From assembly GCF_000315625.1 (NCBI RefSeq), contig NW_005434643.1, forward strand, positions 277,581-341,580: a stretch of 64,000 nucleotides of DNA, given 5' to 3'. Source of the stretch: Guillardia theta CCMP2712 (lineage: Eukaryota > Protista > Cryptophyta). The notes below the pieces were generated by a model. That model was not told the origin of the DNA. It made no database searches and saw only the letters and a list, made by a program, of their open reading frames with translations. A program made the position numbers and the translations under genes. Position 1 is the stretch's first letter; every line of letters starts with the position of its first letter. Positions 21,084-55,159 of the stretch are shown in pieces.

Positions 21084-23036
21084 TTAGTCAACCTCCTCAA
21101 TGTGAGGGCCACCACTGCTCTCCCCAGCTCCCGATGCGGCAGCTCCTTCGCCTCCCATGCCCATGCCTCCCGGCATTTGCCCTCCGGCCGAGTACAGCTT
21201 CGTCATGATCGGCATGGCCACCTGCTCAAGCGCCTTCTGCTTGGCCTCGTACTCCTCGGGTGCGGCGCCATGGTTGGCCTCGAGCCAAGAGATGGTCTCC
21301 TCGATCTTTGCAGTGAGCGACGACTTGTCCGACTCGTCGATTTTGCCGGCAACCTTGTCGTCATTGAGCGTGTTCTTGAGTGAGTAGGCGTAGTTCTCCA
21401 GCGCGTTGCGAGCCTCGACCTTCTTGCGCTGTCGCTCGTCTTCCTCCTTGAAGCGCTCCGCCTCCCGCACCATGCGCTCGATGTCGTCCTGGCTGAGGCG
21501 ACCCTTGTCGTTGGTGATGGTGATCTTGTTCTGCTTGCCCGTGGACTTGTCCTGCGCCGAGACGTTCATGATGCCGTTGGCGTCGAGGTCGAAGGAGACT
21601 TCGATCTGAGGGACGCCGCGGGGGGCCGGCGGGATGCCGTCGAGCTGGAACTTGCCTAGCAGGTTGTTGTCTTTGGTCATCTGGCGCTCGCCCTCAAAGA
21701 CCTGGATGAGCACGCCGGGCTGGTTGTCGGCGTAGGTGGAGAAGGTCTGCGACTTCTTGCAGGGGATGGTCGTGTTGCGCTCGATGAGCTTGGTCATGAC
21801 GCCGCCTGCCGTCTCGATGCCGAGCGACAAGGGCGCAACGTCGAGCAGCAGCAGGTCCTGCGTCTTCTGCGAGTCCACGCCAGCAAGGATGGCAGCCTGG
21901 ACGGCAGCACCGTAGGCGACGGCCTCGTCAGGGTTGATGCTCTTGTTCAGCTCCTTGCCATTGAAGAAGTCCTGCAGCAGCGACTGGACCTTGGGGATGC
22001 GGGTTGACCCGCCGACCAGCACGATCTCGTTGACCTGGCCCTTGGAGATCTTGGCGTCGCGCAGCACGCGGTCCACAGGGTCCATGGTCGCTCGGAAGAG
22101 GTCCGCGCAGAGCTCCTCGAACTTGGCACGCGTGATGTTGGTGTAGAAGTCGATGCCGTCATAGCACGAGTCCACCTCGATGGTCGTCTGCGCCGCCGAC
22201 GACAGCGTGCGCTTGGCACGCTCGCACGCCGTGCGGATGCGCCTGAGGGCGCGGGCGTTGTCGGAGGGGTCCTTCTTGTGCTTGCGCTTAAACTCCTGCA
22301 GCACGTACTGCACGAGGCGGTTGTCGAAGTCCTCGCCTCCCAGGTGCGTGTCGCCTGCCGTCGCCTTCACCTCGAAGATCCCGTCGTCGATGGTCAGTAG
22401 CGACACATCGAAAGTGCCTCCGCCCAGGTCGTAGATGAGGATGTTGCGCTCGCCCGAGCCCTTCTTCTCCAGGCCGTAGGCGATGGCAGCTGCAGTCGGC
22501 TCGTTGATGATGCGCAGGACGTTGAGACCCGCAATCATGCCCGCGTCCTTGGTCGCCTGGCGCTGGGAGTCGTTGAAGTAGGCCGGCACCGTGATGACGG
22601 CATGCTTGACCTCCTTGCCGAGGTAGGCCTCGGCGGTCTCCTTCATCTTGGTGAGGACCATGGACGAGATCTCCTCGGGCGAGAAGGTCTTGGTCTGGCC
22701 CTTGTACTCGGCCTGGATGTGGGGCTTGCCGTCCTTGGGGACTACCTTGAAGGGGAAGTGCTTCAAGTCGTTCTGGAGGGCGGGGTCGTCCATCTTGCGG
22801 CCGATGAGGCGCTTGGCGTCGAAGATTGTGTTGTGAGGGTTCATGGCGGCCTGGTTTTTGGCGGCATCGCCGATGAGGCGCTCGCTGTCGGTGAAGGCAA
22901 CCCAGGAGGGGGTCGTGCGGTTACCTTGGTCGTTTGCGATGATCTCGCAGCGCTCTTGCTGCCAGATGCCGACGCAGGAGTAGGTAGTGCCGAGGTCGAT
23001 GCCAACGGCGGGTCCGTCGATCTTCTTGTTAGACAT
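21084..23036 (-). CDS. HSP70: Cytosolic heat shock protein 70, intronless (copy 1, 650 aa)
   Basis: [35 protein letters not shown]-terminal EEVD; true ATG at 23036 by alignment with copy 2. Confidence 0.99.
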
Positions 23037-23591
23037 GGTAGTGGAAGAAAAGGAAGTGTAGGAAGAGAGAGAAGTCGGAGACAACGGTGCAAGGATGTAG
23101 AGTAGCGCGTGGGCGCCGAAAGCAAGGAAGTTTGTTGGGGGAGGAGGGGCAGGGCTCAGGGTTTTATAGGGGAGGGGTGGGGTCAGCAGAATGTTCTGCA
23201 GGTGCAGCCTGTCCCGGTGTACCGTGGTATTTCTCAAAATTTGTGAAAAATTTGTTCTGAAACTTCAAGCTATCTCAATTAATTTTCCTGATATCTTGAA
23301 ATTTGATGGGTATTTTTGAGCCCTATGAACAATTTCAATTATCAAAACCTAAGAACATTCTACAAACGATTGTTCGATCGAAGGACCCGTCTGTTCTGCC
23401 TAAAAATACCAGCACCCACCCGAATCGAAAGAACATTCGAAACGGGGTGGGTGTGAAATAAAACCCTGATCGCTCCCCCGCTCCTCTCAACAAACTTGCA
23501 GGCACTCCTTGTACGCTAGTTCTCAACCAACACCTCCTCCTCCTCAGCACTTACTTGTCTCTCTTCCTACACTTCCTTCTCTTCCTCTACC
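23037..23591. promoter_or_regulatory. Shared divergent HSP70 promoter with heat-shock elements and a TATA-like box for each copy
   Basis: nGAAnnTTCn at 23188-23197, 23352-23361 and 23430-23439; CTATAAAACCCTGA (minus, about 23156-23169) and AATAAAACCCTGA (plus, about 23457-23469) are homologous. Confidence 0.8.
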
Positions 23592-25547
23592 ATGTCTAAC
23601 AAGAAGATCGACGGACCCGCCGTTGGCATCGACCTCGGCACTACCTACTCCTGCGTCGGCATCTGGCAGCAAGAGCGCTGCGAGATCATCGCAAACGACC
23701 AAGGTAACCGCACGACCCCCTCCTGGGTTGCCTTCACCGACAGCGAGCGCCTCATCGGCGATGCCGCCAAAAACCAGGCCGCCATGAACCCTCACAACAC
23801 AATCTTCGACGCCAAGCGCCTCATCGGCCGCAAGATGGACGACCCCGCCCTCCAGAACGACTTGAAGCACTTCCCCTTCAAGGTAGTCCCCAAGGACGGC
23901 AAGCCCCACATCCAGGCCGAGTACAAGGGCCAGACCAAGACCTTCTCGCCCGAGGAGATCTCGTCCATGGTCCTCACCAAGATGAAGGAGACCGCCGAGG
24001 CCTACCTCGGCAAGGAGGTCAAGCATGCCGTCATCACGGTGCCGGCCTACTTCAACGACTCCCAGCGCCAGGCGACCAAGGACGCGGGCATGATTGCGGG
24101 TCTCAACGTCCTGCGCATCATCAACGAGCCGACTGCAGCTGCCATCGCCTACGGCCTGGAGAAGAAGGGCTCGGGCGAGCGCAACATCCTCATCTACGAC
24201 CTGGGCGGAGGCACCTTCGATGTGTCGCTGCTGACCATCGACGACGGGATCTTCGAGGTGAAGGCGACGGCAGGCGACACGCACCTGGGAGGCGAGGACT
24301 TCGACAACCGCCTCGTGCAGTACGTGCTGCAGGAGTTTAAGCGCAAGCACAAGAAGGACCCCTCCGAAAACGCCCGCGCCCTCAGGCGCATCCGCACGGC
24401 GTGCGAGCGTGCCAAGCGCACGCTGTCGTCGGCGGCGCAGACGACCATCGAGGTGGACTCGTGCTATGACGGCATCGACTTCTACACCAACATCACGCGT
24501 GCCAAGTTCGAGGAGCTCTGCGCGGACCTCTTCCGAGCGACCATGGACCCTGTGGACCGCGTGCTGCGCGACGCCAAGATCTCCAAGGGCCAGGTGAACG
24601 AGATCGTGCTGGTCGGCGGGTCTACCCGCATCCCCAAGGTCCAGTCGCTGCTGCAGGACTTCTTCAACGGCAAGGAGCTAAACAAGAGCATCAACCCTGA
24701 CGAGGCCGTCGCCTACGGTGCTGCCGTCCAGGCTGCCATCCTTGCTGGCGTGGACTCGCAGAAGACGCAGGACCTGCTGCTGCTCGACGTTGCGCCCTTG
24801 TCGCTCGGCATCGAGACGGCAGGCGGCGTCATGACCAAGCTCATAGAGCGCAACACGACCATCCCCTGCAAGAAGTCGCAGACCTTCTCCACCTACGCCG
24901 ACAACCAGCCCGGCGTGCTCATCCAGGTCTTTGAGGGCGAGCGCCAGATGACCAAAGACAATAACTTGCTAGGCAAGTTCCAGCTCGACGGTATCCCGCC
25001 GGCCCCCCGCGGCGTCCCTCAGATCGAAGTCTCCTTCGACCTCGACGCCAACGGCATCATGAACGTCTCGGCGCAGGACAAGTCCACGGGCAAGCAGAAC
25101 AAGATCACCATCACCAACGACAAGGGTCGCCTCAGCCAGGACGACATCGAGCGCATGGTGCGGGAGGCGGAGCGCTTCAAGGAGGAAGACGATCGACAGC
25201 GCAAGAAGGTCGAGGCTCGCAACGCGCTGGAGAACTACGCCTACTCACTCAAGAACACGCTCAATGACGACAAGGTTGCCGGCAAAATCGACGAGTCGGA
25301 CAAGTCGTCGCTCACTGCAAAGATCGAGGAGACCATCTCTTGGCTCGAGGCCAACCATGGCGCCGCACCCGAGGAGTACGAGGCCAAGCAGAAGGCGCTT
25401 GAGCAGGTGGCCATGCCGATCATGACGAAGCTGTACTCGGCCGGAGGGCAGATGCCGGGAGGCATGGGCATGGGAGGCGAAGGAGCTGCCGCATCGGGAG
25501 CTGGGGAGAGCAGTGGCGCTGGTCCTCACATTGAGGAAGTAGATTAG
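23592..25547 (+). CDS. HSP70: Cytosolic heat shock protein 70, intronless (copy 2, 651 aa)
   Basis: Full-length ORF with all HSP70 signatures and EEVD terminus. Confidence 0.99.
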
Positions 25548-34800: not shown

Positions 34801-37133
34801 GATGGGGAGAGGAGGACAAGGAGGGAGAGAAGGAAGACAAGGAGGAATGAACAAGTGATGGGGGACGAGGATTTCGAGCGTGACTTTCTTGCAGGATCAA
34901 AATTTCTGACATGGGCTTCTCAAAGCGCCTGGACAATGGCCAGGTTACAAGGAGGAGAAAGGGGAGAGAGGAGAGGAGAGACACGAGTGCGACGGAAGGA
35001 AGAGTAAAGAGGTCGAGCAGAGAAGAAAACGGCAAGAATGGAGAGGAGGAGCAAGAGGAGGAGGAGGATGGGGATGCAAGGTATGCACAACAACGCAGAA
35101 AGTAACTTCCCACTCCCTCCCCAGTCCTCCTTCGACACGGTTCACGCGGGCACCATGGGATGGCGAGCGCCTGAGCTTCTGCTGAAGCAGGTGAGGGCAG
35201 GAGAAGCCTGCATGTCGTGCTGATGCTGCTCTCAGAGGTGCACCAAGTCTGTTGACATCTTCGCTGTTGGCTGCATCTTCTACTACGTCCTCACTCACGG
35301 TTCCCTCCATCTTCCAGCTCTGCTCCTTTCGCTTCATCTTGCATTTCCTTCTAATATTCCTAAAGTGCCCTTTTCATCTCCTCTCCTCCCCTCTCTCTCC
35401 TCTCTCTCCTCTCCTCTCCTCTCCTCTCCTCTCCTCTCCTCTCCTCTCCTCTCCTCTCCTCTCCTCTCCTCTCCTCTCCTCTCTTAGTCGTTCTTATTTC
35501 GTAGCATTTTCATTCTCCTGAGTCTTTTGCACTTCTTCTAGGTCATCACGCGTTTGGCGAGTGGCTTGAACGAGACTCAAACATCGTGCGAGATCGAACA
35601 AACCTTTCGTTGCTAGGTCCATACAAGCAACTCCCTCCTGTCCGCTCTTGTCCTCCCCACTTGTGTTGTCTTGTGTTTGCTGGCCCCCTCCTTTCCCCTC
35701 TCCCTCTCCTTGTCGCCGCCTTCCTCTCCCCCCTCGTCCTGCATCGGCAAGAGCTTGCCTGCTTCATGTTCACTCTCTCTCCTTCAGATCACTGGCCGGA
35801 AGCTCAGGACTTGATCGCTGAGCTCATTCGTCATGACTCGTCCAAGGTAATTCAGATCTCCTCGCTCGTGTCCCTCCGACAAATTTCAACATTGCCCTTC
35901 CTCCCTCTCCCTCTCCTTTCTCTTCCCATTCCCAAATCTCCTCCTCCTCCTCCTCCTCCTCCTTTTGAGCGTTTGCTCCTCATGTCATTGGATTGATCTC
36001 GCAGAGACCGACGGCAGCGGAGGCGAGGAAGCATCCCTTCTTTTGGAGCAAAGCAACATGTCTCCGGTGACTGCTGCTCGTCTCCCTTCTCTTCCTCCTT
36101 CATATCGCCTCCCTTTCTTGTCTGCTCCCGCTCTCCGCTCCCTCTTGCTCGTTGCCCGCGCTCTTATACTTTCTCAGCTTTCTGCTTGATTGCTCGGACC
36201 GTGTGGAGAACGAGGATGCGTCTTCCTTGTTGGTAACGGCCATGGAGAGAAGAGCGCAGATGGTGAGGAACAAAGATGATTACTCCTTCGTTGTCAGCCC
36301 TGTACAATCTCGTCTCAATTCTCGTCTTCCTCTTCCTCTTCCCCATATTGCCTCCCATCCTTCACTTCTTCTATTACGTTTATCTCGTCCACCTGCTCGT
36401 CTATTAGAAAAATCGCAATATTTTACTACCACTATCTCCTCCTCCTCCACCACCACCACCTCCTCCTCCTCCATCTCAACTAATTGCTACTTTCTGTGTT
36501 GACGCTTCATCTGAAAGGTGTTCGCGAGCCCTTGGAACCTTCAGCTTGACAGCAGCTTCATTGCAACCTTGCTCGAGTACCTGAGACAAGACGCTTCCCC
36601 TGCTCTGACCCTGCTGGCAGGAGGAGGAAGTACAACTACAACTCCCTTAGAGATCTCCTGCGGGCGATCAGAAACAAGAAAAATCACTTCAGGCACGCCC
36701 TCCTCCCTCCCCTCTTCTCCATCTTCCTCCTCTCTCTGGACATGCTCTCGCTCCTTGTCATTCTTGTTCGCTGTGCCATGTTGCTCCTCACCTAACGCCA
36801 CTGCAGGGAGCTGCCGCAGGCCGTGCAGGACATGCTGGGAGGAGTGCCGGACGGGTACATGCTCTACTTCAAGACCAAGTTCCCCCGCATCATTCTTGAG
36901 ATGTACTTGTTCGCGCTTGAGACGGGTGAGGCAGCTGAGGGAGAGGTGAGGAGGTTGATGAGTATGTGCAGAGCTGACGAGGAACGAGGCTGTGTTTTCT
37001 GCCTACTTGTCTCCATGAGCGTTTTTCCCTGTTTGAACGTCTGAGGTTTTTGGAGTTGAAGGAGGAGGGTTGTACAGTAAGCGAGGGTATCAAGTATCTC
37101 GACTTCTTTATCCTTCAACAGATTGTTACACTA
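31750..37133 (+). CDS. IRE1: IRE1 ER-stress sensor kinase/endoribonuclease, multi-exon (3' end approximate)
   Basis: Signal peptide; luminal DGSLY / LQDLVENSPF; TM segment; kinase LGHGSQGTIVY, VAVKRLL, HPNITRYF, HRDLKPGN, ISDMG, GTMGWRAPE; KEN RNase LLDCSDRVE, LRDLLRAIRNKKNHFRELP, YFKTKFP. Confidence 0.96.
34022..34073 (+). repeat. (ACTG)13 tandem repeat inside an IRE1 intron
   Basis: Directly visible. Confidence 0.95.
35380..35485. repeat. (CTCCT)n intronic pentanucleotide repeat
   Basis: Directly visible. Confidence 0.9.
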
Positions 37134-40370: not shown

Positions 40371-43072
40371 ATGCAGTGGAGGACGAGGGTGGCAGCGCTG
40401 GTTCTTTGTGCCGCTGTGATGGTGACAGGGGAAAAGCAAGAGAAGTTGCGGTGGGCACAAGACAAGGAAAGACTTTATGTCACCATCGCTGTTGAATGCG
40501 CAAGTGACAGGAGCGTGGGTCACACCGAAGATCGATTCTTGTTCTCCTGCAAGGGGAGTGATGGGAACTTACATAAGACAGACTTTGAGTTGAGAGAACC
40601 GATCAAACCGTCGGCCAGTCACTGCAAGCAACAAAGAGGAGAAGAAGTCTGCATGTGAGCATCTTGCCAACTACCCCTCTTTGCATCGCCTTCGAACATT
40701 GAATCTTGTTCAGCCCCCTCCCTATATTCTCCTCTCTTCTCCTCGACATCCCTCTCTCTCCATACACTTAGACGTGGATGTCGCAAGCATTGCTGATACT
40801 TGTAATGACAGACTACAAAAAGCGCACCCTCACTATTTCGACAAGCTTACAACTGATAAGGAAATCCTGAACATTCTGAAGCCAGATTGGTCGAGGTGGA
40901 AGGATGAAGACGAGGGGTGCGCATGATTGTGTCACCCTCTTGGCTGGCTGATTTTTTCTGTTCTTTGCAATACAGAGGAGCTTTCGAAAACGATTACGAG
41001 GTGTTGCCCAAGTCAATCATGCTCCCGGGGACGGTCGAACTCGTGGACAAGACTGTCAAGGAAGGCAAAGTAGCCTTCGTGCACGCCTACTTGCCCTGGT
41101 GAGGAGGAGGAGGAGGAGGAGGAGGAGGAGGAGGAGAAGGAGGAGGAGGAGGAGGAGGAGGAGGAGGAGGAGGAGGAGATATGTAGGGATCGCTCACATG
41201 GTTGTAGGTGCAATATGTGTGCCTACACCCGGCAAGGCTTCATCCGAGCCGCAAAAGAACTCGGGGGGAACCAGACAAACAACGTCTTCATTTACATTGA
41301 CGCGAGGGAGGACAAGGCGGCGGCAAAGCGCTACAACATCACGTGCGTGCCGGAGTGTTTCTTCGTCATCTCTAGGAATGGCGAGCAAGATGAGGTGATG
41401 GCGGCCAAGGGGAGTAACGACGACATTGCAAATGCGATCAAGGCACATTTGCCCCCAGCGCTCAGCAAGGTGAGCACGGACAGCGAGGTCAATCATTTCA
41501 TCGAGGAGAACGCAGTTTCTGTTCTCGTTGCGGTCAAGGGTGGTCTGATGTCCAAGGCGACCGACTCCAGTGAGTATGTTGCAGCCAAGAAAGCCGCACA
41601 GACCCTGCGGGGGAAGGTGATGTTGGAATCAAGGTGGAGGGGGTCAACTGAATCTGATTTGTCAGGCGAGCTTCATGTACACTGACAAGAAACTCTTGGG
41701 ACTTGCGCCAGGAAACATGCGGGTCTGGGTGAATGGATCAAATCCTCAGACCGCAGCGCTGGGCTCCGATTCCACGGCACTAGCGAAACAAGTCATTGGG
41801 CTGAGCTGGGGTCTAGAGCTCTTCAACTACACCTGGAAGAAAAGAGAAGTGTTCGACAGCGTTGGAATCCCGATCGCCCATGTGTATCCGGGTACCAAGT
41901 CAGAAGATCTTGAGATGTTCAAGGAAGTCGCGAAGGAGCTTAGTGGCAAGATTGCATTCCTCCGCTTCGCGGAATCTGAGAATTACATGCTCAAAGACTT
42001 TGGGCTTGTGGAAGACAAGTTCCCTGCATTTGGAATCGCTGAGAGCTTCGATGCCAAGGCAAAGAGATATGCCTTCGAAGGAGATTCTTTCACCAAGGAA
42101 AAAATCATTGAGTTCTGCAAACGTTTCCTTGATGGGAAGCTTGAGCCCTCTTACAAATCAGAAGTGGTTCCAGGGGGAGAGCATGTTCGTGGGACTGTGC
42201 GGCATGTTGTGTGGAAGACTCTTGCCGAGAGCAAGTGGAATGACATCACTGCAAAAGAAGATGTTCTCCTCCTGCTCTACAAACCTTGGTCCAACGATAA
42301 CCAGAAAGTTCTGACCATATTCGACAAGGTTGCAGCGGCGTTGGAGAAGGTCGAAGGAGTTTCTTTGGGCAAGCTTGACACAAGCAAGAATCACTATGAT
42401 GCCGAACGGTTTCCGATTGATGAGTACAGCAGCGAACCAGCTGTCTTCTTGTGCAAAGCCGGATCGAAGCCGACACAGTTCGCCGGGGCGCTGACTCAGA
42501 AGGATCTCTTCAAGTTCCTTGCCAAGAATTCCCCAGCGGTTAAAGCCGGTTGGGAGACACTTGTGAAACCAAAGCTGCAAGAGATCAAGGCAGCAGAGGA
42601 AGAGAAGAAGAAGAAAGCAGAGGAGGCAGCAGCTGCTGAAAAGGCCAAACTAGAGGAAGAGAGGAAGAAGCTCGACGAGCTGGCGGCCACGGCTGAGAAG
42701 ATCGACGTGGGCTCGAAAAAGGATGGGGGCCTGATCAAGCAGATCATCTCTCCCGGCTCAGGAGACTCAACCCCGCAAAAGGGAGACCTCGTCAAGGCTC
42801 ACTACACTGGAACCCTGCTCGATGGAAGCAAGTTCGACAGCTCACGGGATCGGGGCGATCCCTTCTCTTTCACCATCGGGCAAGGACAAGTAATCGCGTG
42901 TTGGGACGAAGCCTTCCTTACCATGAAGAAAGGAGAGAGAGCTCTTTTGACTTGCACGGCTGAGAATGCCTACGGAGACAGAGGAGCTGGAGAGAAGATT
43001 CCTCCTGGCGCCACCCTCAGGTTTGATGTGGAGCTCATCGACTTTGGCAACAAAGCCAAGTCAGAGTTGTAG
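40371..43072 (+). CDS. ER-luminal multidomain foldase: signal peptide + p23/CS domain + PDI-like thioredoxin domains + FKBP PPIase + KSEL
   Basis: Signal MQWRTRVAALVLCAAVMVTG; p23 motifs LRWAQDKERLYVTI and LKPDWSRWKDEDE; WCNMC across intron 41099-41207; FLDGKLEPSYKSE; FKBP VKAHYTGTLLDGSKFDSSRDRG...IPPGATLRFDVELI; ends KSEL*. Confidence 0.85.
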
Positions 43073-43209
43073 GAAGGATCTCATTGGTGAAGAGAATACA
43101 TGTTGTGTACACGCGTGGCATTCCAACTCAACTACGATCGCGACCATGCTGGAAGAATATACACTCTTTGTTACAACTATACATAGATGATCTACTGTAA
43201 GTAGCTTTT

Positions 43210-43545
43210 TCACATGGACTGATTGTCCCTCGGGGAGAGAAGAAAGCGTCTTCGTCTCTTGACAATGTAGTTAGCAAACGATCCTGGCATAACAGGACGG
43301 GAGGTCGGAAGAACGTGACTTGATTCTGTGTTCATAACGAAATTATGGGAGTGCCTCTTGTATTTGCTGCACCATTGTGGGAGAAACTCGAAGCAACCAT
43401 GATGGTCCTCTTCACCATAACTGATCGCGTCGTGGGATGATAGCAATATCGTGCTGCATTGGCGAGATCCTGCTGCCTGCGTGTGTACAAGGCGTCTCCT
43501 GAATTGCGACACGAATGCTCTGGACAACAGTGTACCTTTGACCAT
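43210..43545 (-). CDS. Small intronless protein of an unnamed PGS[WF]A...RRF family (copy A), mitochondrial-presequence-like N-terminus
   Basis: MVKGTLLSRAFVSQFRRRLVHT...; shares PQWCSKYKRHSH and PVMPGSFANYIVKRRRRF with the ORFs at 52964 and 53522. Confidence 0.7.
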   Translation of the reverse strand: MVKGTLLSRAFVSQFRRRLVHTQAAGSRQCSTILLSSHDAISYGEEDHHGCFEFLPQWCSKYKRHSHNFVMNTESSHVLPTSRPVMPGSFANYIVKRRRRFLLSPRDNQSM

Positions 43546-44881
43546 CTCTTGCAAGGATATCGGATGTCTGCGGGAGTAAAGAAGCAGGTCAAGGGGAAGT
43601 GAGAAGATGCGGGAGGTTATCAAGGAGATAGGTTGTAGCGGTGGGAGGGCGGGGAGGGGGTGAGGACGAGAAGGATCGAACTGATCTGTCGGGGGAGCAG
43701 AGGGCGGGGTCTTGTTGGAAGTCAGGAACCCCGATGATGCTGACGTCAAGTGTCAGCGATCACCCTAAAACACGTCGTTTCGAATATCAAAAGAATCCTT
43801 TTTCAATCGAAAAGGTGTATGTTCACAAAATTTCATTGGTGGGTGGAGGAGCAAAGGGTGAATGTGATACTTTGAGAGGTAGGAGACCAGGGGTACAGGG
43901 GGAAACAGGGATGAGAAGGGGGTCAAGTGAAGTACCCCCTCCGATGTGATGCTCAACTTAAAAAGAAATTATAAAAACAGGACGGCCTCCTCTCCACCCG
44001 TCAATATCCATACGCGTACCCCTTGACTTGGGACCTCGATTATTTCAACAAGAATTATAAAGGTACCCCCTTCCTGCATATGATTTTCACGGGTGTTGTG
44101 AGAGCATGGTTCTTTTTATCATATTGAGTAAATCCAGTTACTCAACTAAACTTCAAGTCCCTCATACAGCACTTACTAGGCTTCGCGCGAGGTCCGGGCC
44201 CGGCATGGAGGAGCCGCCCGGAACCCGGCGAAGACACTGAGGCAGGTCACGGCACTACTGCGTCGCCGGCGCTCCGATCTGAGGACTCTGACGCGGGCTC
44301 GGGGAGTGGAGGCTGCACACGGAGAAGATCTCCGTGCACAGTTGACTCTCACGGCGATGGGCTCCGGGGCAACTATTCCAAGTATACCTGAGCTGAGGTT
44401 ACGATAGGGGTGAAGGCAAGAGATTGTTCGAGTGGTTCAATAAGTAGATAAAGGGATCTGCAGACCCTGACGGACCACTCAGATGATAAGGGGGAAGATA
44501 CAACGCTTCAGCATCGCTGTTCTGATTTACTACAGCACAAGCAGAACCTTACACAGAATTTGAAGGGTTGCAAAATACTTCAACTCTCTCAATTCAAACT
44601 TGAACTTTGGACCCAATATTTGGAGGCTTCATTTTCGTACTCAACATGAAAACTGAAAAGAGATCTTTTCGATAGACCCCTTCGGAGCGGCGGGCCGACA
44701 GGTGGTACACGTGGGTGGCTCACGGGATCAATCGGAGGAGTCACGGGATCCTTGGCCCCGTCCCCCTCGCAACTTCAACCGACCTCCTCGCGCATCCTCG
44801 CTCACTTGCTCTCCTCCCTGCTCCCTCCACGCACTTGTCGTCAACGCTCAGGTCGCTGATACCTCTTCCTCCTTTTCCACT

Positions 44882-45184
44882 ATGGTTTCTACCGACATCA
44901 TGATCGATGCCCCTCATGTGAAGATCTTGCATCAATCTAGCCCAGCAGATCGCCCCCGAGCCAACCGTATCTCTATCCAATCCACCGAATGGTTCCTTCC
45001 AACAACCGCTTCAAGCTGCAGGCAGGACAGCATCGAGTCCTCGCCTCCTCCAGCACACTTTGTCAAGAGAGGACGAGGAAACCGAGTGAAGCTGGACGAG
45101 AAGGTGATTGACTGCGTCAGCGTCAACGAGTGGAGACGGCAAAGAAACAGACAAGTCGGAGCTGAGTTGTCTCAAGAGCTGTAG
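44882..45184 (+). CDS. Small hypothetical protein
   Basis: ATG after a pyrimidine-rich leader; 100 codons; ends tail-to-tail with the next gene. Confidence 0.45.
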   Translation: MVSTDIMIDAPHVKILHQSSPADRPRANRISIQSTEWFLPTTASSCRQDSIESSPPPAHFVKRGRGNRVKLDEKVIDCVSVNEWRRQRNRQVGAELSQEL

Positions 45185-45301
45185 ACCTCTCGATGCCTGT
45201 GCCACCATTGAAACATTCTTCTTGTTGTATTATACATATTCAAAATAAACAGAATTGGAGTGAACCAAGATACAAAAACTGCCCCTCAGAGTGACAAGCA
45301 T

Positions 45302-48300
45302 TCACAGCACGACAACCTCGTCGTGGTTTGGCAGCTCTTTGACAAGTGTGTTGGACCTCGACAGTGAAGCATGCGACGGGGCGACCTGCGAGTCGACCAA
45401 GACGAGGCTGCTCGCAGTGACATCGAGGTCGAGGGAGGTAGTCGAGTCGCGGATCACTGTGACCACGACGGTAGCATGATTCTCGAGTAGAGAGAAGACC
45501 TGCGATGAGGTCAGAGTAGGTGAGAGTCATGGAGAACATGACAAGAAAGGTGAGAGGCAGTGAGATAGACGTCACCTCAGCATCCGTCACGATAGCAACA
45601 TCTTGACCCTGCATCGCATGCACAACATCTCCTTCCTTGAGAGACTCGCTCTCCGTATCTCCGTCAGCTTTCACAACAGTAAGCATGCCATCCTCTGTCC
45701 TCGCCAGCTCGAATCGCTGCTGGGCCCTGCCCTTCTCCAAGCTCTGCTTCAGCAACATGTTTCTCTTCCTGAGCAGCAAGGAACTCTCCTGGACTTGCTT
45801 CAACGCATTTCTGATCTCGATGTTGGAAGGAGCTTCCTCCACCTAGCAGCAGGTCAGCGACGGGAGAGGCCCCCGAGAGGTGAAGATGAATCAGACTTGG
45901 TCTATGGACTTGTCCAGCGTGAACACGCCTTTGACCCAATCACTTTCGTCCTGCATAGATGGTGAGCAAGACAAGGAGACAAGTCCAGGGACCTGCTGGG
46001 CAGCCGTGCGGTTGAAGAGGTTGGAGCGCATCTGATTCATCTTGGCGTGAAGCTCATTCCTCTTCATCTGCAACCAGGTCAACACACGACAGCGCCCACA
46101 GACAAGGGGAGAAGCAGCTCGAAGATGAGGATGAGGGGAAGAAGGAGGAGAGGAAGGGGAAGGGGAGGCTTTGAAATGAAGAGGAAAGAAAGGGGAGGGA
46201 GAAGGTTTTGATAAGAGAAAGACGACGTGAACGACGAAGAAGACAACGAGTAGGAGGACAAGGAAAACCTCGAGCAGGTCCAGCCCGTCCTTGACTTGCT
46301 TGCACTTGTCCTTCACCATCTTATCGATGGGAGTCTCAGCATCAGCCTCCTCCTTCTGCTTGATGGCAGGGCTGTAGATTTCCACGTTCGCTGTCTCCCT
46401 GCCCTCCGACGCTCCTTTCTCTCCCTCCTCCACCCGAGCAGCTCCAAGTTTGACGTTCAAGTGCTTCGGAATCGAGTTCGTGTACACAGCAATACCATTC
46501 CTGCACGCCAGTCACTTACGACTTCCCTTCTCCTCCCTTCCCTCCTCTCTCATTCACTAGAACCCTGATCTCCTCCACTTGTCCTCCTCCCTTCCTCCAT
46601 TCGTCCTCCCGGCTCTTTCTCGCGCCCTCTGCTCCACCATCACCTGATGCTCGCCTCGTCGTCGAGGAACTTGTTCTGCACATTCATCCCACGGGAGGGA
46701 GCGAGAGGAGAGTCGAGGTCGCTGATCTTGATCTCTCGTTGCTTCCCCTTGGGCCGCAGGCTCCCTTCCAGCAGACAATCTCGATTCCACCTGCTCCCAG
46801 TAAGACCTGGCGCCCTGTCCCTTCCGCCAGACATATCTTCCTCCTTCTCACTCACTTGAGCCGGAGGTAAACCCTCCCCTTCACCGGCTCCTCCTCCTCG
46901 TAGGCTCCTTCCGGATCCTCGAGGTCGAACCATCCCTCCTGCATGAAACTGAGTCAATACATCCCTCCCCTCCCTCCCTCCCTCCCCTCCATCTCCCTCG
47001 CCTCTCCCTCCTCCTTCTTTTCCCCTGCCCCTTCTCCCCTCATCCCCTGAGCTCACCAGCGTACGGCAAGTCATGAGGGGGCAGAGTGGAACTCTGCCAA
47101 GTTGAATCAGCGGAAGAAAGGAGGTCGAGAGGTCATGGAGGAGGAGGACACAAGGACTGATGAGACGCGAGCAGGAAAAGAAGGAGAAGGGGGAGGAAGT
47201 GTTGTATGAGGGCTAACCTGATTTCACCCATGAAGTCGTCGAGCGAGAGCTTATCATTGTCGAACATTTGTACGCGCAACATGGTGAAAGGGGCAGAGTG
47301 GTTCTGATACACCCCGTGATCGCTCAAGTTTCCTCCCTGCAATCGCGAGTGAGGGGAGGAGAAGAAAGGGCAAGACAAGTACCTCGAGGTACAGCTTGAA
47401 CTTCTGATCGAACTTGGGGTTGAGGGACTTCGAAACTATCCGAGATTTCACCTGCTCCTCATCAGCATGCAAAAATCCCGCACCCCACTTCTTCCCTCAC
47501 TTCCTCGTCATCTTCCCCTTCCTCTCTCCCTCCCCTTCTCCTCCTTGTCTTTCGTTTCCTCTTTTCCAATTTCTTCTTCCCAAAGATTGTACTTCTCCTC
47601 CCACCAGCCACCTCAACCACCACCTCCACCATTTTGTCTCCCTCGCTCTCGCTTCCGTTCCGTTCAATCCTCTCTCACACCTTTGCGTACTCCCCAGGAA
47701 GAGACGGAGGTCCCTTCGACACAACCTGAAGAGATAAGAAGGTCAAGGAGACGAGGGGAAAAGAACTCAAACAGGAGCAGCAGCGGAAGGAGGGGGAAGA
47801 AGATGTGAGTTGGCTCACCTTCCACATTGCCTGAAGAGAAATCGCAGATGGAACCCTCTTCACTCCCTGTGACACGTTTAAACGAGGAGGAGGTGGAGAG
47901 ATAGGAGAGAGAGAGAGGTAGAAAGGGTGGAGGATGGGAAAGAGCAAGAGGGCAAGAGAGCAGTAAGAGGGGATGGGAAAGAGCAGGAGGGCAAGAGAGC
48001 AGGAAGAGGCAGGAGCACTATAAGGAACAGCAAGTGGAAAGAGGGGGGTGTAGGTAGAGGGAGGAGCAGCATGCACGAACATTAACAGCCTCCGTCAAGT
48101 CGCCTTCCGACTTCCATGAAGTCGATGAAGTGAGTCGTTTCCTGGCATGCTCTCAGTCCGATCCTCCTTGCTCCCTCTCAACCCCTGAACCCCATTCTCC
48201 TCTCTGACCATACCCTCCCTCCTCCCTCCTCCCTCCTCCCTCCTCCCTCCTCCCTCCTCCCTCCTCCCTCCTCCCTCCTCCCTCGTCTTACTCTCTCTCA

Positions 48301-51300
48301 AGGGCTGCACTCGTGGACATGGTACGGGATCGTGCCAGGGGAGCAGAACGCTTTTCTTGAGGGATCTCGACCTTCAACCCCTTGAGGGGTCGACAAAGTT
48401 TATTCGCCTCCTTGTGTGTGGGCTGTGGCGCGTCCTGCTCCTGCTCTTTTCCCTTCATCCCGATCAGAGACTGTTGGAGCGACGAGTTAGTGAAGGCCGC
48501 GATGACAGAAGGAGAAGAGGCAGCTTCATGCCTTGAGGCGAGAGATGACCGCTGAAAGTCCTAACGTCTCGAGTCAGTTTCCTTCCTTTTCTTCGCTCTC
48601 AAGTCACCAGATTGTACGAGCAGCTTCAGCCTCGCGAATCTCGTGAGGGCGTGAGACGACGCGTCCTCGATCTCCTCTGCTCTTCTTGTCAGTCTCCTGG
48701 ACAACCAGCGGCTGCTCTCACCCTCCTCGCGAGCGGTAGGAACGAGGCTGAGGAGGCAGTAGGGGTCGCTCAAGCCGTTGGCGTCCATGGCCGCGAGCCC
48801 CTCCGCCTTCACCAGGTGAACTTCAACGTACCTACACCATCAGAGTCATCGTCCTCCCTCGGCCCCTTCCTTCTCCTCCTTCGCCTCCTCCTGTCCTTCT
48901 TCTTGTCCCTTCCCTGTCTTCGCCCTTCCTCTACTCTTCTTCCCTCCACCTTGTCATCTCTCCTCTGTCCTCCTCTTCCCCTTCCCCTCCCCCCGCCCCA
49001 TAGTCTCATTCTCCACCTTGGGTTGACATCTTCAAAGGCGCGCAGCAGCTGCTTAGTGCGACGGTCTCGCAGCATGTCCTCCATGTCACTCCTGTCCCCA
49101 CGTCACCCGTCCATCCTCCATCCTCCTCCTCCTCTCGCACCTGCTCGTAAACTTGCGGAAGACGCAACCAGGCCCTCCGCACTCTTTGATGGTCTCAGCC
49201 AGTCCCAGCGGCAGCGTCTCGAGGTACTCTTCCTCCTGCGCGCACGTTCCTCGTCACCAGCAGGAGCATCAGCGGGACTGCCTCACGTTCCACTCCTCGT
49301 AGACGACTTCCGGGATAACGTGCAGCCTGACCAGCAGCTGACAAGCTCGTGAGATGTTGTGCTCGTGAGAAACTGACAGGGCGGATGCTTCTCACCGCGT
49401 GGATCACTTCGAACAGGCTGTGAACCCTGCGGTAGAGCTGGAGGAACCGGTCAGATACATGCTGAAACGAGGAGGGGAAACGACAAGGAAGAGGAAGAGG
49501 AAGAGGAAGAGGGAAAGGGAGAAAGAAAGGGAGAGGGAGAGGGAGAGGACGAAGTGCATGGAGATGATGGAGAGTAAGACAAAGACGGAGATAGACTGAA
49601 AGAGGGGAAGCAGCAGCAACTCACAATGTCGGCTCCCTCGAAGAAGATGAGCCATGCCAGCAGCACGAACTTGGCCTCATAGTAGGAAGGGATCTATCGC
49701 AAACTCAGGGGAGAGAAGAGCATATCCGAAGGCATCACCCAAGAGAGAAGAACGTCCGTCATGTTCTCAATCACATTCAGAATGAGGAAGATGATCCAGA
49801 ACGACAGCCACTGCCTATCGTCGTCTCCTCCTGCCGCCATGGCCGTCAATGCAAGCATGTAGAGCGGAAGGAGAGGGGCGAGAGGAAGACGAGAGGTGAA
49901 ACCAAGAGGACGAGTTACACGAGGGACACAAGGAGTGAAAGAAGCAAGAGAGGAAGCAACAAGGGAGGAGCAGCAGCAGAAGAGAAACAGGAGGAGCCTG
50001 TGAGGCTTGCCTGGAGTCTCGATGGCATGAACTGACTTGAAGCAGGCCCATAGAGCCAGCACGTAGGAGAGTCTCATCGCCCACAAGCCAGAGCCTGTCG
50101 GCTCGTTGATGCAGAACAAGGGATGCGCTCCTATTCCGGGCCAGTCACAATATGATCTCCCTCCCCTCCCCTCTCCTCCCATCCCCTCCCCTCATACACT
50201 TTTTCCCATCTCCTTGTCCTCACATCACCTGGTTCTCCACACTTGGGAGCTTTGCCGAGTGCGTTCGCGAGGGCTCCCACGTTCTCCGACATCATCTTGT
50301 TCATCTGAACTCCTTGTCACCTCCTCCTCCTTCACATCTCACACACACCTTTCGCCATTTCTTGTAACCGTCCGACAACTGACAGCCTGGAAATTTGTAG
50401 GTGCACATGTTGGATGGCTGAGCAAGATGTCAGGAAGGGACAGGGGAACGGGAAGTTCACTCGCCTCGCATGAAGCAGGAAAGTGATACTTGCACTTAGG
50501 AACTTCACCGAACTCGTCGATCTGTAGAAACGTCACACTCGATCCTCGGGGACTCAGTCACATGCCTGAGGGCAGTAGCCAGCAGCCACGCATGGAAACT
50601 TGGAGCTCTCTGAAAGAGCCTGGGACAGATGAGAGGAGGCGATTGGGCACAGGGGCGGTAGGGGAGGGGAAATAAAGTATGAGGTTGAAAAACGTGTAGA
50701 AAGAACAAAGGAAGGAGACAGAAAAACTGAAGATGAAAAGACAGGCGAAAGATGCTTCTTACTTTGACGAGCTTGTCGCAAATGGTGATACACCTAGATG
50801 AAAACATCACATCTGCTCGGTAGCCTAGTTCTCGTTCACCTCTTGAGGCCAAAGCACATCGCCCGGCAGTCAATGTCTGACAGCCCTCCTTCTGCTTCGC
50901 CGGACAGCATCATCGTCATGACCTACGAGCCTTGAGCATCCTCAACCCCTTCCATCCCTCTCACCTTGTCGCATAGAGTGCACATGGCGCCTTCGCCTTT
51001 GAATATCACGTCGACGACCTGGAGGTACAAGATCAGCCGGCGCAAGAGCTTCCTCTGAGAGCTGACCAGCATCCCGATGTCCTTGACGGTCGTGATGGTC
51101 TTGGCGAACGCCATGGTTCCCCACAGCATGACCCTAGAGGTTCTCGCAGTCACGCTCAGGCACACAGCATGTCAGCTCCTCGCTACCATGGCGGCGGTAA
51201 GGGAATCCCTCCTGACAACAGACATGTCAAGCTTGAACAAGGCAGCTCAAGAGCTTTACCTTCAGCTGGGGTTGGGAAAGACACGAGCAACAATACAAAC

Positions 51301-51389
51301 AGAAGCGTCGCTAGATTAAAAATGTTTACCGCAGGTAAATTCACAGAGCAATATCTTCTCTCCTCACCTGTCTGCGCTGTACTGACCAT
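45302..51389 (-). CDS. Multi-exon membrane protein with a Cys-rich N-terminal region, HVA22/REEP (TB2/DP1) domain, C2 domain, coiled coil and C-terminal PDZ-like domain
   Basis: HAIETPGGDDDRQWLSFWII...SWIPSYYEAKFVLLAWL..EGADI (REEP); VKAEGLAAMDANGLSDPYC, KSRIVSKSLNPKFDQ, VQMFDNDKLSLDDFMGE, EGWFDL (C2); LKEGDVVHAMQGQDV...TVVVTVIR (PDZ-like). The domains are confident; single-gene linkage and start are inferred. Confidence 0.7.
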
Positions 51390-51718
51390 GGAGTCTTGTA
51401 TTTTGGAGATCAATACAACATCAAATCAGTTTCCTGGAAATGACAAACGTGAGCAAGAAGGAAAGAGAGTGATTTGCTATCCAAAAAAAAAATTGTCACG
51501 TCGTGCTGCTCATGTTTCGGCGCTAAGCCTTGAATGAAGAACTTGACGATTAAGACGATGTCCATTGTGGTATGGTACTCAAGCAAGCACAATCCAGATA
51601 CGGCCCGAGAGTTGAAGAGCCGGTCATGCTCGCGAATATAACTAGCGGAGGTTGTGAGATGTTAGGCATCACAAACGGATGCGTCAGGCTGCATGAGGAG
51701 AGGTTGAATCTCGAGTCG

Positions 51719-51813
51719 GAGCATGAGCATGAGCATGAGCATGAGCATGAGCATGAGCATGAGCATGAGCATGAGCACGAGCACGAGCATGAGCATGAGC
51801 ATGAGCATGAGCA
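51719..51813. repeat. (GAGCAT)n hexanucleotide repeat
   Basis: Directly visible, about 15 units with GAGCAC variants. Confidence 0.95.
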
Positions 51814-52963
51814 CGACGTGGGCAAAGAGCGGGGTTGAGCGTAGAGCTCTGCCTTGCAATGAGCGGGTGATTCACATATGTGGCAACGATTATCCTGGGG
51901 GACGGGGTACCCGTAGCTTTTCCGAGGTGGTGGGGGTGGGTGACTATCTATCTAGTGGGACCTATAGAAAGAAGATCTTATAAGTAAAAGTCTATTTGAT
52001 CATGGCTATGGTCCTTTGCTCGGCTTCAGAGAAAGAGGTCGCACTTTGGCGAGTGGGTGGGGTGGTACTTAGAAGCTCCTGAGTAAAGACGCACTAGGAG
52101 GGAGAATGAGGGGTGCATGCCAATATGGACCCCCTAAAGGTAGCACTGCCAAACCATGAATTAGGGGTAGGGGTGTATACCCCTGTAAGAAGTTTACTTC
52201 CTTGATCTTAGAGAGCTCCTAGGGGGGGTCCTAGTAACTCTCCTATCAGAAATCCAAGGAGGTTTTTTTACTACACATAGTAAACTCGTGGCTGGAGGGA
52301 ATCAAGGAGGGGGTAGTGGAAGTAGGGGTGCAAGTGATTGTAAATCATGGTAGTCTAGACGGGTACAACGACATGGAGGAGGGGTACGAGGGTTAACAAC
52401 AAACATGGTCTAGTCTTCATCTCCTATAGTCCCCGAGCCCGGACGTTGGCCGGTCGCCGGGCCCGTCCGAATGTGGGGGACGGGAGGCCCTCCCTTCTAT
52501 CGTGGAGTAATTTAAAATGTTGTTGATCTTTACTTCATTATAAAAACCGAAAATAATCCTTTCTGAAAATCTATGGTAGGGAAATATAAAACTCTATTAT
52601 CCAATCCCCCAGTCTTTGCGCCCCAAACAGAATCTCCCTCCGAATCCAAACTGGGCAAGTTTGCAACAGGTAGAAGAGCAAGGGGAGCGGCGGGAAATAG
52701 TGGCGAGTATGAAGGCGACACCTGAATAGTAGCAAGGTCTTTAGTATGATCAGAATTTAGATTGTCAGTCCTGTACTTCAAAAGAACATGTGGTGTTTTC
52801 AACCCGTTGTGATAACGAAACGGGTCGTGACAATGCCTCATGTGTACTCGGTGATCAAATGCACTTGAAAATTCTGGCAAGTCTCGTCATTGTTGAAATT
52901 TAGTAATGGAATAGAATAAGAGTTTGTTTTCTTATCTAAGACGTTGCTTGTAGGGAACCAGCC

Positions 52964-53305
52964 ATGCGGACAAATCGTATAGCACAAAGTTGTTGCAGAA
53001 TTCCTTTCCTGAAGCCAGAAAATGCATTGGTAGGAGGTATTCAACGAGAACATTCACTGCAAATCAAACCTGTGACAATCGAAGATATAGACTCTCGCAT
53101 TGCAGGCAGCAATGTATGCTTTCAAGAATGGAAAAGCAAATATAAACAGTCAAAAATCGAAACCGGGTTTGATGGAAAATACTATCTCCCCCCTGACGAG
53201 GGAGCATCAAACAGGGTGCAAATGCCCGTATTGCCAGGTAGCTGGGCACGCTTGGTTCAAAGAAAGAGAAGACGTTTTCTAAACTCGCTACCGGGAAGGC
53301 AATAA
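52964..53305 (+). CDS. Small intronless protein of the PGS[WF]A...RRF family (copy C)
   Basis: QEWKSKYKQ and PVLPGSWARLVQRKRRRFL match copies A and B. Confidence 0.7.
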   Translation: MRTNRIAQSCCRIPFLKPENALVGGIQREHSLQIKPVTIEDIDSRIAGSNVCFQEWKSKYKQSKIETGFDGKYYLPPDEGASNRVQMPVLPGSWARLVQRKRRRFLNSLPGRQ

Positions 53306-53521
53306 GTTCGTACGAAAAGTTGATGGACGTTTTGAAACAACTATCCAGATCAACAATTCTTTATTTTGCATATGAATAAAACCTCTCAATGAGGCTTTTA
53401 CAATGGCATATGTGTGCACAGGGATTACCCTTTTTACAAGAAATCAATCCATCACCTGTCATTCAACCAACTGGTTCTTCCGAGGCCACCATTTACATGT
53501 TTGTACAAGCCAAATAGTCAT

Positions 53522-53905
53522 TTACCGCGGAGGCCACACAAACCTCTTCCTGCGCTTCTGGAAACCATCTGCCCATGACCCAGGGCAGACTTTCTTCTGA
53601 GAATTTTGCCAAGTGCAGTGATCTGCACAATGCTTCTCTAGAAATTGAATGAGATCGTACTTGTGCGAGTGCTGCTCGTATTCTTGACACCATTCTGGGG
53701 CATACTCCCATATCGATGGGGTTGACGACCCTTGAAATTCAGAGGGAGGTTCTTCCTCGTTGTCGTTGAACTGCACGCTTGTTGCAGTTGAAAAACATCT
53801 AGACGCGGTCAAGCCGTTTTTGGCGACCGATACCCGGTCGGGAGATAATACGGACCTCAGCAAGTATCCAGTAGCAGCTTTTCTCATTTGCAGCAGGTTG
53901 CTCAT
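53522..53905 (-). CDS. Small intronless protein of the PGS[WF]A...RRF family (copy B), mitochondrial-presequence-like N-terminus
   Basis: MSNLLQMRKAATGYLLRSVL...SRCFST; PEWCQEYEQHSH and VCPGSWADGFQKRRKRF; start at 53905 or 53887. Confidence 0.7.
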   Translation of the reverse strand: MSNLLQMRKAATGYLLRSVLSPDRVSVAKNGLTASRCFSTATSVQFNDNEEEPPSEFQGSSTPSIWEYAPEWCQEYEQHSHKYDLIQFLEKHCADHCTWQNSQKKVCPGSWADGFQKRRKRFVWPPR

Positions 53906-55159
53906 CACCTCTGATGCAGCACAGAACAATCTAGCTGAATTTTGGCAAAATCTGTGTTTCTTGTACAAGGAAAACTTTGATGGCGAAGAGGAGCGCTTCT
54001 TTCCGAAATTCAAATGTTCCCAACTTCGAAGATTCAAGGTGCAAACTCCTTTCCTCAATGAAAATTGTAAAATCAAATTTGCCTCTGTTTCAGATCAAGA
54101 TTAAATTGCCAAGATTCAAGCGAAAGTAATACCCAAGCAGAAAACGCAGTTCTAATAGACCTTGGAGGGGAAGTGAAATGTAGAAATCGAAACCTCGTTT
54201 GAAGTCGAAAACAGTAAAAGATATCTTGAAATACTCCAATCCCGATTCACGAATACAGGCGATAGTCTTGGACGAGAGCGAGCTCACGAAGAAAGGTCCA
54301 GGTGTGTTGAAATGAAATGAGCGCAATGGAACAAGGGGCTGGTTGACCTAGTCGGGGAGAAGCTGATGAGAGTCCGAACGAAGGGGGGTGGGGTGGGTGG
54401 CTTGTACCTGTACCGGTGCAATTTTCGATGAGGATTCTAGATGGGTGGGGTCTAGAGGGTGGTAGAGTTTACCTGGGTGGATGAAGAGCGATGGATGCTA
54501 GAGAAGGTGGGTGGGGGTAAATTGGTTCGAAACATCAAACTTGCTGAGTATGGTAGGGGTGTGGACTAGTACAGATAACAGCATGACATGGGGTTACTCC
54601 AGCACCCTACCCACATTATGTCAAGGTAGATTTGTTCTCCTCGAACTTTGGGGGGTAGGGGTGGCCTTCCAAACCCTCATATTCTTGGCAAGGCGGGGGT
54701 ACAGTCATCCATGGGGGCACAGGGGGGTAGTAGCACAGAACCAACTAAGGTGAGATGATACCCTGACTTTATTAAGGGCTTGTTCGAGGAAATTAACCTC
54801 TATGCGTCACAATAAGTGCAACCATCAAACGGATTGAAAGGAGGGGTTCTACAAAACAAATTCACGAAAACATAGTTTTTCACTTCATAAAATCGTTGTG
54901 GGTCAGCAGGCCACACCCCGTCCCCCAATTGACCCCCTTTTACCCCAGTCAGCCCATATAGCGTTAGGTGGGTACTCCTTCCACCTACCACCTTTGCTGA
55001 CAATTATGAAATCTCCCTCAGATACTCTCCAACCACCCCACGGACAACACCACCCCCTCACACAACCTGCACCAAGCTTTACTCAAACCTATCCTGCCCA
55101 CTGCTGTTCCTCAAACTTTACTGATAATTTCACTTAACTGCGCGCTGGACCATTACTTC

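Follow-up and report, generated by a model that had tools for sequence, protein, structure and literature searches.

The stretch analyzed here (the window) comprises 64,000 nucleotides of the cryptophyte Guillardia theta CCMP2712 (RefSeq assembly GCF_000315625.1, contig NW_005434643.1, forward-strand positions 277,581 to 341,580). It codes for three small proteins, A, B and C, which form a true paralogous family that originated by local duplication. Their genes all lie inside 10.7 kb. Gene A is located on the minus strand (43210-43545) and consists of 111 codons plus the stop codon; an identical protein (P0001) is present in UniRef. Gene B, also on the minus strand (53522-53905, 127 codons plus the stop codon), has a gene model in the NCBI set, and the sources listed for its protein include NCBI and mmetsp. 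Gene C is encoded on the plus strand (52964-53305, 113 codons plus the stop codon) and occurs on a contig that also spans B (see below). B and C are convergent, tail to tail, with 216 bp between their stop codons. For A and B, the assigned start is the first ATG within a longer stop-to-stop frame. These open reading frames (ORFs) had earlier been picked out from the letters of the DNA, in what we call the original prediction, as an expanded lineage-specific family of intronless and putatively mitochondrial proteins. All three are found in the window with the coordinates, strands and motifs given there, including the N-terminal strings RRLVHT and RCFST.

Gene B is encoded on NCBI record JH992995.1 from assembly GCA_000315625.1, which we take to be the nuclear genome assembly of the cryptophyte G. 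theta CCMP2712. According to the gene list of this record, multi-exon genes for an HVA22 and a C2 protein are situated between A and the B/C pair. Gene C has no gene model in this record, unlike B. The region around the pair is compositionally distinct: the bin 52001-54000 is the second most AT-rich 2-kb bin, with a GC content of 0.456 compared to about 0.54 for the whole window. The GC content at third codon positions (GC3) is only 0.37 in C, compared to 0.54-0.60 in A, B and the neighboring PDI-FKBP exon (see below).

The relationship of the three proteins is evident at the protein level. Pairwise BLASTP yields E-values of 2e-12 (A-B), 5e-8 (A-C) and 6e-6 (B-C). The proteins are alignable over their C-terminal halves, which share a common domain of about 65 residues. 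Significance after shuffling had been set beforehand as a test of this relationship; the local alignment scores correspond to z values of 7.8-16.7, and none of 2000 shuffles reaches them. When the window is searched in all six frames with a hidden Markov model (HMM) of the family, exactly three loci are retrieved (A, B and C, with E-values of about 1e-30 to 1e-32). A fourth copy in the 64-kb window was found neither by this search nor by tblastn with each of the proteins. A 21-residue match at 36866-36928 was considered as a further copy and was rejected as arginine-rich noise.

As had been proposed, the DNA has diverged while the protein motifs persist. The best DNA match between A and B covers just 47 nt at 70% identity. 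The serine codon of an invariant Pro-Gly-Ser is TCG, TCA and AGC, respectively, across the three copies, which is a switch of codon family. The loci together with 500-nt flanks show no significant DNA similarity, so that an origin as a DNA repeat or transposon is excluded. Saturated paralog DNA and retained protein motifs agree with the notion of an old duplication under selection. The term "expanded", however, is an overstatement: G. theta has three copies, and three members are known from Hanusia.

Relatives are few. A word-indexed search of 5.8 billion proteins added just two sequences, each from Hanusia phi in EukProt. One of them (P0004) is the ortholog of B, and the other (P0005) is the ortholog of C, having 113 residues like C and being 70% identical. 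An exhaustive search of 1.84 billion cluster representatives with the domain profile returned A, B, C and one additional Hanusia protein, P0008 (87 residues, E-value 2e-9). Two other matches from this search are internally repetitive proteins and are regarded as spurious. P0008 is a fourth paralog, which carries both motifs of the domain (DWQAPQWAKRYEK ... PLCPGTWADVFQRRRRRF). It is closest to B (41% identity) and is devoid of an N-terminal extension, starting directly at the domain. When a Guillardia ortholog of P0008 was searched for among predicted proteins by word search, only P0008 itself was obtained, and there is no contig on record for it. A clear Hanusia ortholog of A was found neither by the word search nor by the exhaustive profile search.

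In nucleotide data, the C locus has a counterpart in ENA, the Guillardia-like metagenome contig L003 (725 nt), with 90.5% identity. Metagenome contigs of JGI were scanned twice, which gave pattern matches but no relative that was confirmed by tblastn. Thus, the only detectable kin of the family come from Hanusia phi, which belongs to a sister cryptophyte genus, and from one environmental contig, as anticipated for a lineage-specific family. As far as HMMER can detect, its members are limited to the Guillardia/Hanusia clade. Literature searches yielded no paper that describes such proteins.

The names of the Hanusia proteins resemble transcript contig identifiers. P0004 and P0005 share the contig number 767204, being ORFs 2 and 3, respectively; going by these names only, the tail-to-tail arrangement of B and C may be conserved in Hanusia. 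P0004 matches Guillardia B up to KRRKR, beyond which it continues with 25 unrelated residues (residues 122-146). This end possibly reflects intron retention, a frameshift introduced when the transcript was assembled, or a true difference at the C-terminus.

The conserved domain covers residues 46-106 of A (43228-43410, minus strand; CFEFLPQWCSKYKRHSH ... PVMPGSFANYIVKRRRRFLLSPR), residues 60-127 of B (53525-53728, minus strand) and residues 46-113 of C (53099-53302, plus strand). The boundaries are based on alignments and, in the case of A and C, also on the HMM match. The domain begins with an aromatic segment, [FW]-[EQ]..[EQ]-W-x3-Y-[KE], which is followed by a variable linker, by P-G-[ST]-[WF]-A-x4, by a run of five Lys/Arg residues (K/R5), by a Phe and by an end rich in Pro and Arg. 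Invariant or nearly so among the six sequences are W-x3-Y, P-G-[ST]-[WF]-A, two Arg within the K/R5 run, the subsequent Phe and the P/R-rich end. The K/R5 run is part of the most conserved block and is present in all six members (as KRRRR, KRRKR, RKRRR or RRRRR). The linker between the two conserved blocks is rich in indels, and its length varies by up to about 15 residues. Cysteines of the domain are not conserved: there are four in B and its Hanusia ortholog only, two in A and one each in C and P0008. AlphaFold2 models reach a predicted local distance difference test score (pLDDT) of 50 with an alignment of full-length A and of 58 with an alignment of the B domain. Regular elements are confined to helices over the W-x3-Y segment and the [WF]A-x4-K/R5-F segment, with the remainder disordered, so that helices over both conserved segments are predicted tentatively.

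Comparison between species reveals an uneven distribution of changes. In a global alignment of B with its Hanusia ortholog, identity is about 94% over residues 59-121 and about 41% over residues 1-58, where the motif SR.FS.ATS is kept. For C and its Hanusia ortholog, start, stop and length are preserved, and residues 34-76 and 89-113 are nearly invariant. The coding sequence (CDS) of C is 96.5% identical to the environmental contig L003 (12 changes in 342 nt, with 93% amino-acid identity), compared to 83.3% for the 5' flank and 88.5% for the 3' flank. Conservation between species, taken together with the saturation of the paralog DNA, supports the view that the domain is under purifying selection, which the original prediction had set as a test.

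The contig that spans C and B (L002, 1,670 nt, JGI sample 3300017164) matches the window at 52653-54322 with 100% identity in a single collinear block without gaps. The series to which this sample belongs presumably consists of re-assembled MMETSP transcriptomes. If L002 represents RNA, then B and C are both expressed and intronless. Independently of this contig, "mmetsp" is listed among the sources of protein B. Being located on a transcript-type contig and conserved in Hanusia phi, gene C is an annotation gap.

For gene A, expression was assessed with four sequencing runs over 42700-44200. In an RNA-seq run from 2026, the neighboring plus-strand gene is covered only by reads with the first mate on the plus strand, which accumulate toward its 3' end. 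Over the 3' part of A (43210-43413), all reads have the first mate on the minus strand, and the depth is at most 1.45 compared to 25.7 for the neighbor. In two older runs, the interval 43188-43453 is covered by contigs 205 and 182 nt long, at a depth of 3.6-4.3 compared to 84 and 63 for the neighbor. These runs have zero depth in the intergenic region 43465-44200 and therefore behave as RNA. The fourth run has an even, about fourfold cover across the region and is DNA-like. Transcripts of gene A derive from the predicted strand and reach about 5% of the level of its neighbor, and A is the lowest-expressed copy. The claim that all three genes lack introns thus holds for B and C on the collinear contig, while collinearity of A is restricted to the RNA-covered part (43188-43453). 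Their surroundings do bear introns, as had been stated: neighboring genes code for 358 residues over 2.6 kb and for 444 residues over 2.5 kb.

The N-terminal regions of A and B resemble mitochondrial presequences. In A, this region (residues 1-38; 43432-43545, minus strand) has six Lys/Arg among the first 30 residues, a first acidic residue only at position 39, a hydrophobic moment of 0.72 and a strong amphipathic stretch. It contains SRQC↓ST, a looser fit to an R-3 processing site. In B, the corresponding region (residues 1-38; 53792-53905, minus strand) has five Lys/Arg and one acidic residue among the first 30 and ends in SRCF↓ST, a textbook R-x-F↓S (R-3) site. The Hanusia ortholog of B retains the presequence-like character, including SRGF↓SI, despite the low identity (about 41%) in this part. 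An N-terminus of 20-40 residues that is positively charged overall and nearly free of acidic residues, as is typical of presequences, is found in A and B and is lacking in P0008. C is basic in the first 18 residues only and has no obvious R-2 or R-3 motif.

Other destinations were considered as well. Targeting to the cryptophyte plastid or the periplastidial compartment requires a signal peptide; this was rejected by eye, the N-termini having no uninterrupted hydrophobic core. A peroxisomal targeting signal of type 1 (PTS1) was likewise rejected by eye, the C-termini being QSM, PPR and GRQ. The proposed mitochondrial location is therefore retained in part. It is consistent with the presequence-like, fast-evolving N-termini and R-3 sites of A, B and the Hanusia ortholog of B; for C, with its weak N-terminus, it is doubtful, and P0008 has no extension at all. 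Judged from these features, import into the matrix is the most likely fate of A and B.

Some features of the surroundings are described for completeness. A long single exon at 41675-43072 (plus strand) codes for Thioredoxin_6, Thioredoxin and FKBP_C domains and has KSEL at the C-terminus, pointing to a PDI-FKBP fusion that stays in the endoplasmic reticulum. This exon and gene A are convergent. Judged by contig ends, their transcripts have 3' ends at about 43113 and about 43188, respectively, which are about 75 nt apart, and read depth between these ends is thin. Farther upstream in the window, an inverted repeat is formed by 21112-23075 and 23553-25516, with arms of 1,964 nt that are 99% complementary and a spacer of 477 nt. 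The repeat may have arisen by recent inverted duplication or represent a large palindrome able to form a hairpin. A dinucleotide microsatellite is located at 51550-51840. Its frames read as (CS)n, (HE)n and (MS)n, which results in long spurious ORFs.

In our best explanation, A, B and C belong to a family restricted to Guillardia and Hanusia, of which A and B are imported into the mitochondrial matrix via cleavable presequences, fold upon a partner and place a basic helix on a polyanion. We assign a probability of roughly 0.45 to this explanation as a whole. A and B would be made with presequences of about 38 residues, subject to processing of the R-3 type, which would direct them to the mitochondrial matrix. 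The mature protein is short and probably requires its partner for folding. Its basic helix, capped by Trp/Phe, may dock on a polyanionic surface, which could be mitoribosomal or other RNA, mitochondrial DNA, cardiolipin or the acidic face of a protein, while the aromatic helix would supply the protein contact. The proteins of the family may be lineage-specific accessory subunits or assembly or regulatory factors. The regulatory role and the ligands of the basic tail put forward in the original prediction are conjectural, too. C and P0008 may act outside of mitochondria or enter them by other signals.

Several observations weigh against this explanation. The presequences of A and B are assigned by composition and motif, and the K/R5 run fits a monopartite nuclear localization signal (NLS) at least as well as it fits a polyanion-binding helix. 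The Hanusia ortholog of C has only three Lys/Arg among its first 30 residues. Residues 34-45 of C are invariant between the species and thus belong to the mature protein. Given the weak N-terminus of C and the lack of an extension in P0008, import into mitochondria is not common to all members. Both structure models are of low quality (pLDDT 50 and 58). The ratio of nonsynonymous to synonymous substitutions (dN/dS, Nei-Gojobori) for C and L003 is 0.56, a value that is based on only 12 changes and is not significant by itself. Finally, A is expressed at a very low level and is without a clear Hanusia ortholog, so that relaxed constraint on this copy is possible.

A bolder version of our explanation, which we regard as rather doubtful, is that the paralogs have been split by compartment, A and B residing in the matrix, C and P0008 in the nucleus or the cytosol. 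A single module, made of an aromatic helix and a basic helix, would then operate on RNA or DNA in either place. This could couple gene expression in mitochondria to that in the nucleus in a lineage-specific manner, or the proteins might be new supernumerary subunits of the cryptophyte mitoribosome or respiratory chain.

The main rival to matrix import of A and B, unlikely as we consider it, is that the family consists of small nuclear or nucleolar proteins, or of chromatin- or RNA-binding proteins unrelated to the nucleomorph. The K/R5 run would serve both as an NLS and as a tail that binds nucleic acid, and A and B would have basic N-termini without an import function. This would account for the occurrence of the run in six of six members within the most conserved block, and it copes well with the missing extension of P0008 and the weak one of C. 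Proteins of 9-14 kDa need no NLS, however, and no known nuclear domain was detected in Pfam searches. In addition, A and B have 23-38 acid-free N-terminal residues, an R-3 site and fast evolution beside a nearly invariant mature part, which is typical of a cleaved presequence. Clearly less probable are cytosolic or other short linear-motif proteins. In this case, the PG[ST][WF]A-basic-F block would dock on a conserved enzyme or receptor, as a regulator or inhibitor and with no role in binding nucleic acid or lipid. That the models are largely disordered, with conservation concentrated in two short blocks on either side of a variable, indel-rich linker, is what such proteins would look like; but neither a partner nor a known motif class was matched, and the presequence-like N-termini are left unexplained.

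It is also conceivable, albeit very improbable, that at least one of the ORFs is non-functional, being a chance ORF, a paralog in decay or an antisense artifact due to merging in an unstranded contig. This would apply especially to A, with a read depth of about 5% of its neighbor and no Hanusia ortholog found, or to C, which might be an antisense reading of the 3' untranslated region of B. C lacks a gene model at NCBI, the source data of contig L002 are possibly unstranded, and the dN/dS of 0.56 is computed from few sites. Such a fate is hard to reconcile with the frame of C being intact and of equal length in Hanusia (70% identity), with its preservation in the environmental relative (93% amino-acid identity) and with a CDS that is far better conserved than its flanks. 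Moreover, the family motifs are present in each of the three frames (profile E-values down to 1e-32), and the reads of A are on the sense strand. The remaining alternative, to which we give the least credit, is a highly diverged member of a named family that was missed by sequence methods, such as a supernumerary subunit of the mitoribosome or of a respiratory complex, an LYR-type protein or a WhiB-like protein. Small basic mitochondrial subunits do evolve fast, a PDB profile weakly matches WhiB4 with its G-W-G and basic tail (E-value 0.64), and a structural row of the ESM Atlas lists an LYR cluster (TM score 0.43). Against this, nothing significant was obtained with Pfam-A, NCBIfam or PDB profiles, the feature scores of the Atlas are at noise level (at most 0.85), the four cysteines of the WhiB type are found only in B, and an L-Y-R/K motif is lacking. 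Matrix import of A and B, followed by folding on a partner, is the explanation that we prefer.

The original prediction had recognized no known domain, which is borne out by comparison with Pfam-A, NCBIfam and PDB: neither the individual members nor the profile of the family have a significant match. In Pfam-A and NCBIfam, A has zero matches, and the best matches of the others are at chance level and concern one member each (Ribosomal_L36, E-value 0.034; Thionin, E-value 0.045). A PDB search by sequence gave no match at an E-value of up to 10, and the PDB profile search gave WhiB4 only. Feature and structure searches in the ESM Atlas returned only rows at noise level. With respect to the sequences compared, this is a genuine unnamed orphan family, and no known family can claim its members. 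The novelty lies in the sequence and not in any demonstrated mechanism. Small genes of narrow taxonomic range are frequent in the genomes of protists, and the practical value is modest: a gene model for C is added to the G. theta annotation, and a defined motif can be used to find further members. The mitochondrial proteome of cryptophytes and its complexes are largely uncharted, and A and B are candidate lineage-specific components.

When the family is compared with known systems, the likeness to the WhiB-like (Wbl) proteins of actinobacteria is superficial. Their Gly-Trp turn (G[VI]WGG) and basic C-terminal tail recall PG[ST][WF]A and the K/R5 run, in a match that is not significant. B has four cysteines upstream of the turn, which are not conserved in A, C and P0008. 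Membership was rejected, as the four cysteines that ligate the 4Fe-4S cluster would be present only in B and its Hanusia ortholog, an E-value of 0.64 is at chance level and the lineage is unrelated. LYR-motif proteins (Complex1_LYR) were rejected as well: neither PF05347 nor PF13233 is matched, the tripeptides are KYK, EYE and RYE, and a TM score of 0.43 is below any threshold.

The monopartite NLS, K-(K/R)-X-(K/R), is matched near the C-terminus in six of six members. The K/R5 run is, however, part of an extended region of conservation, PG[ST][WF]A-x4-...-F, which an NLS does not need, and the proteins are small enough to diffuse into nuclei. The closest parallel is with small nucleus-encoded mitochondrial proteins that carry cleavable presequences, such as supernumerary mitoribosomal or oxidative phosphorylation subunits and assembly factors, which are a class and not a homologous family. 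The proteins described here differ from this class in having no Pfam or PDB similarity and in that C and P0008 are without a convincing presequence, and their targeting is predicted. They share with it a size of 110-130 residues and a basic N-terminus with many hydroxylated and few acidic residues, which bears a site of the R-3 type and evolves much faster than the mature part. In both, the mature protein is small and basic and has little structure by itself.

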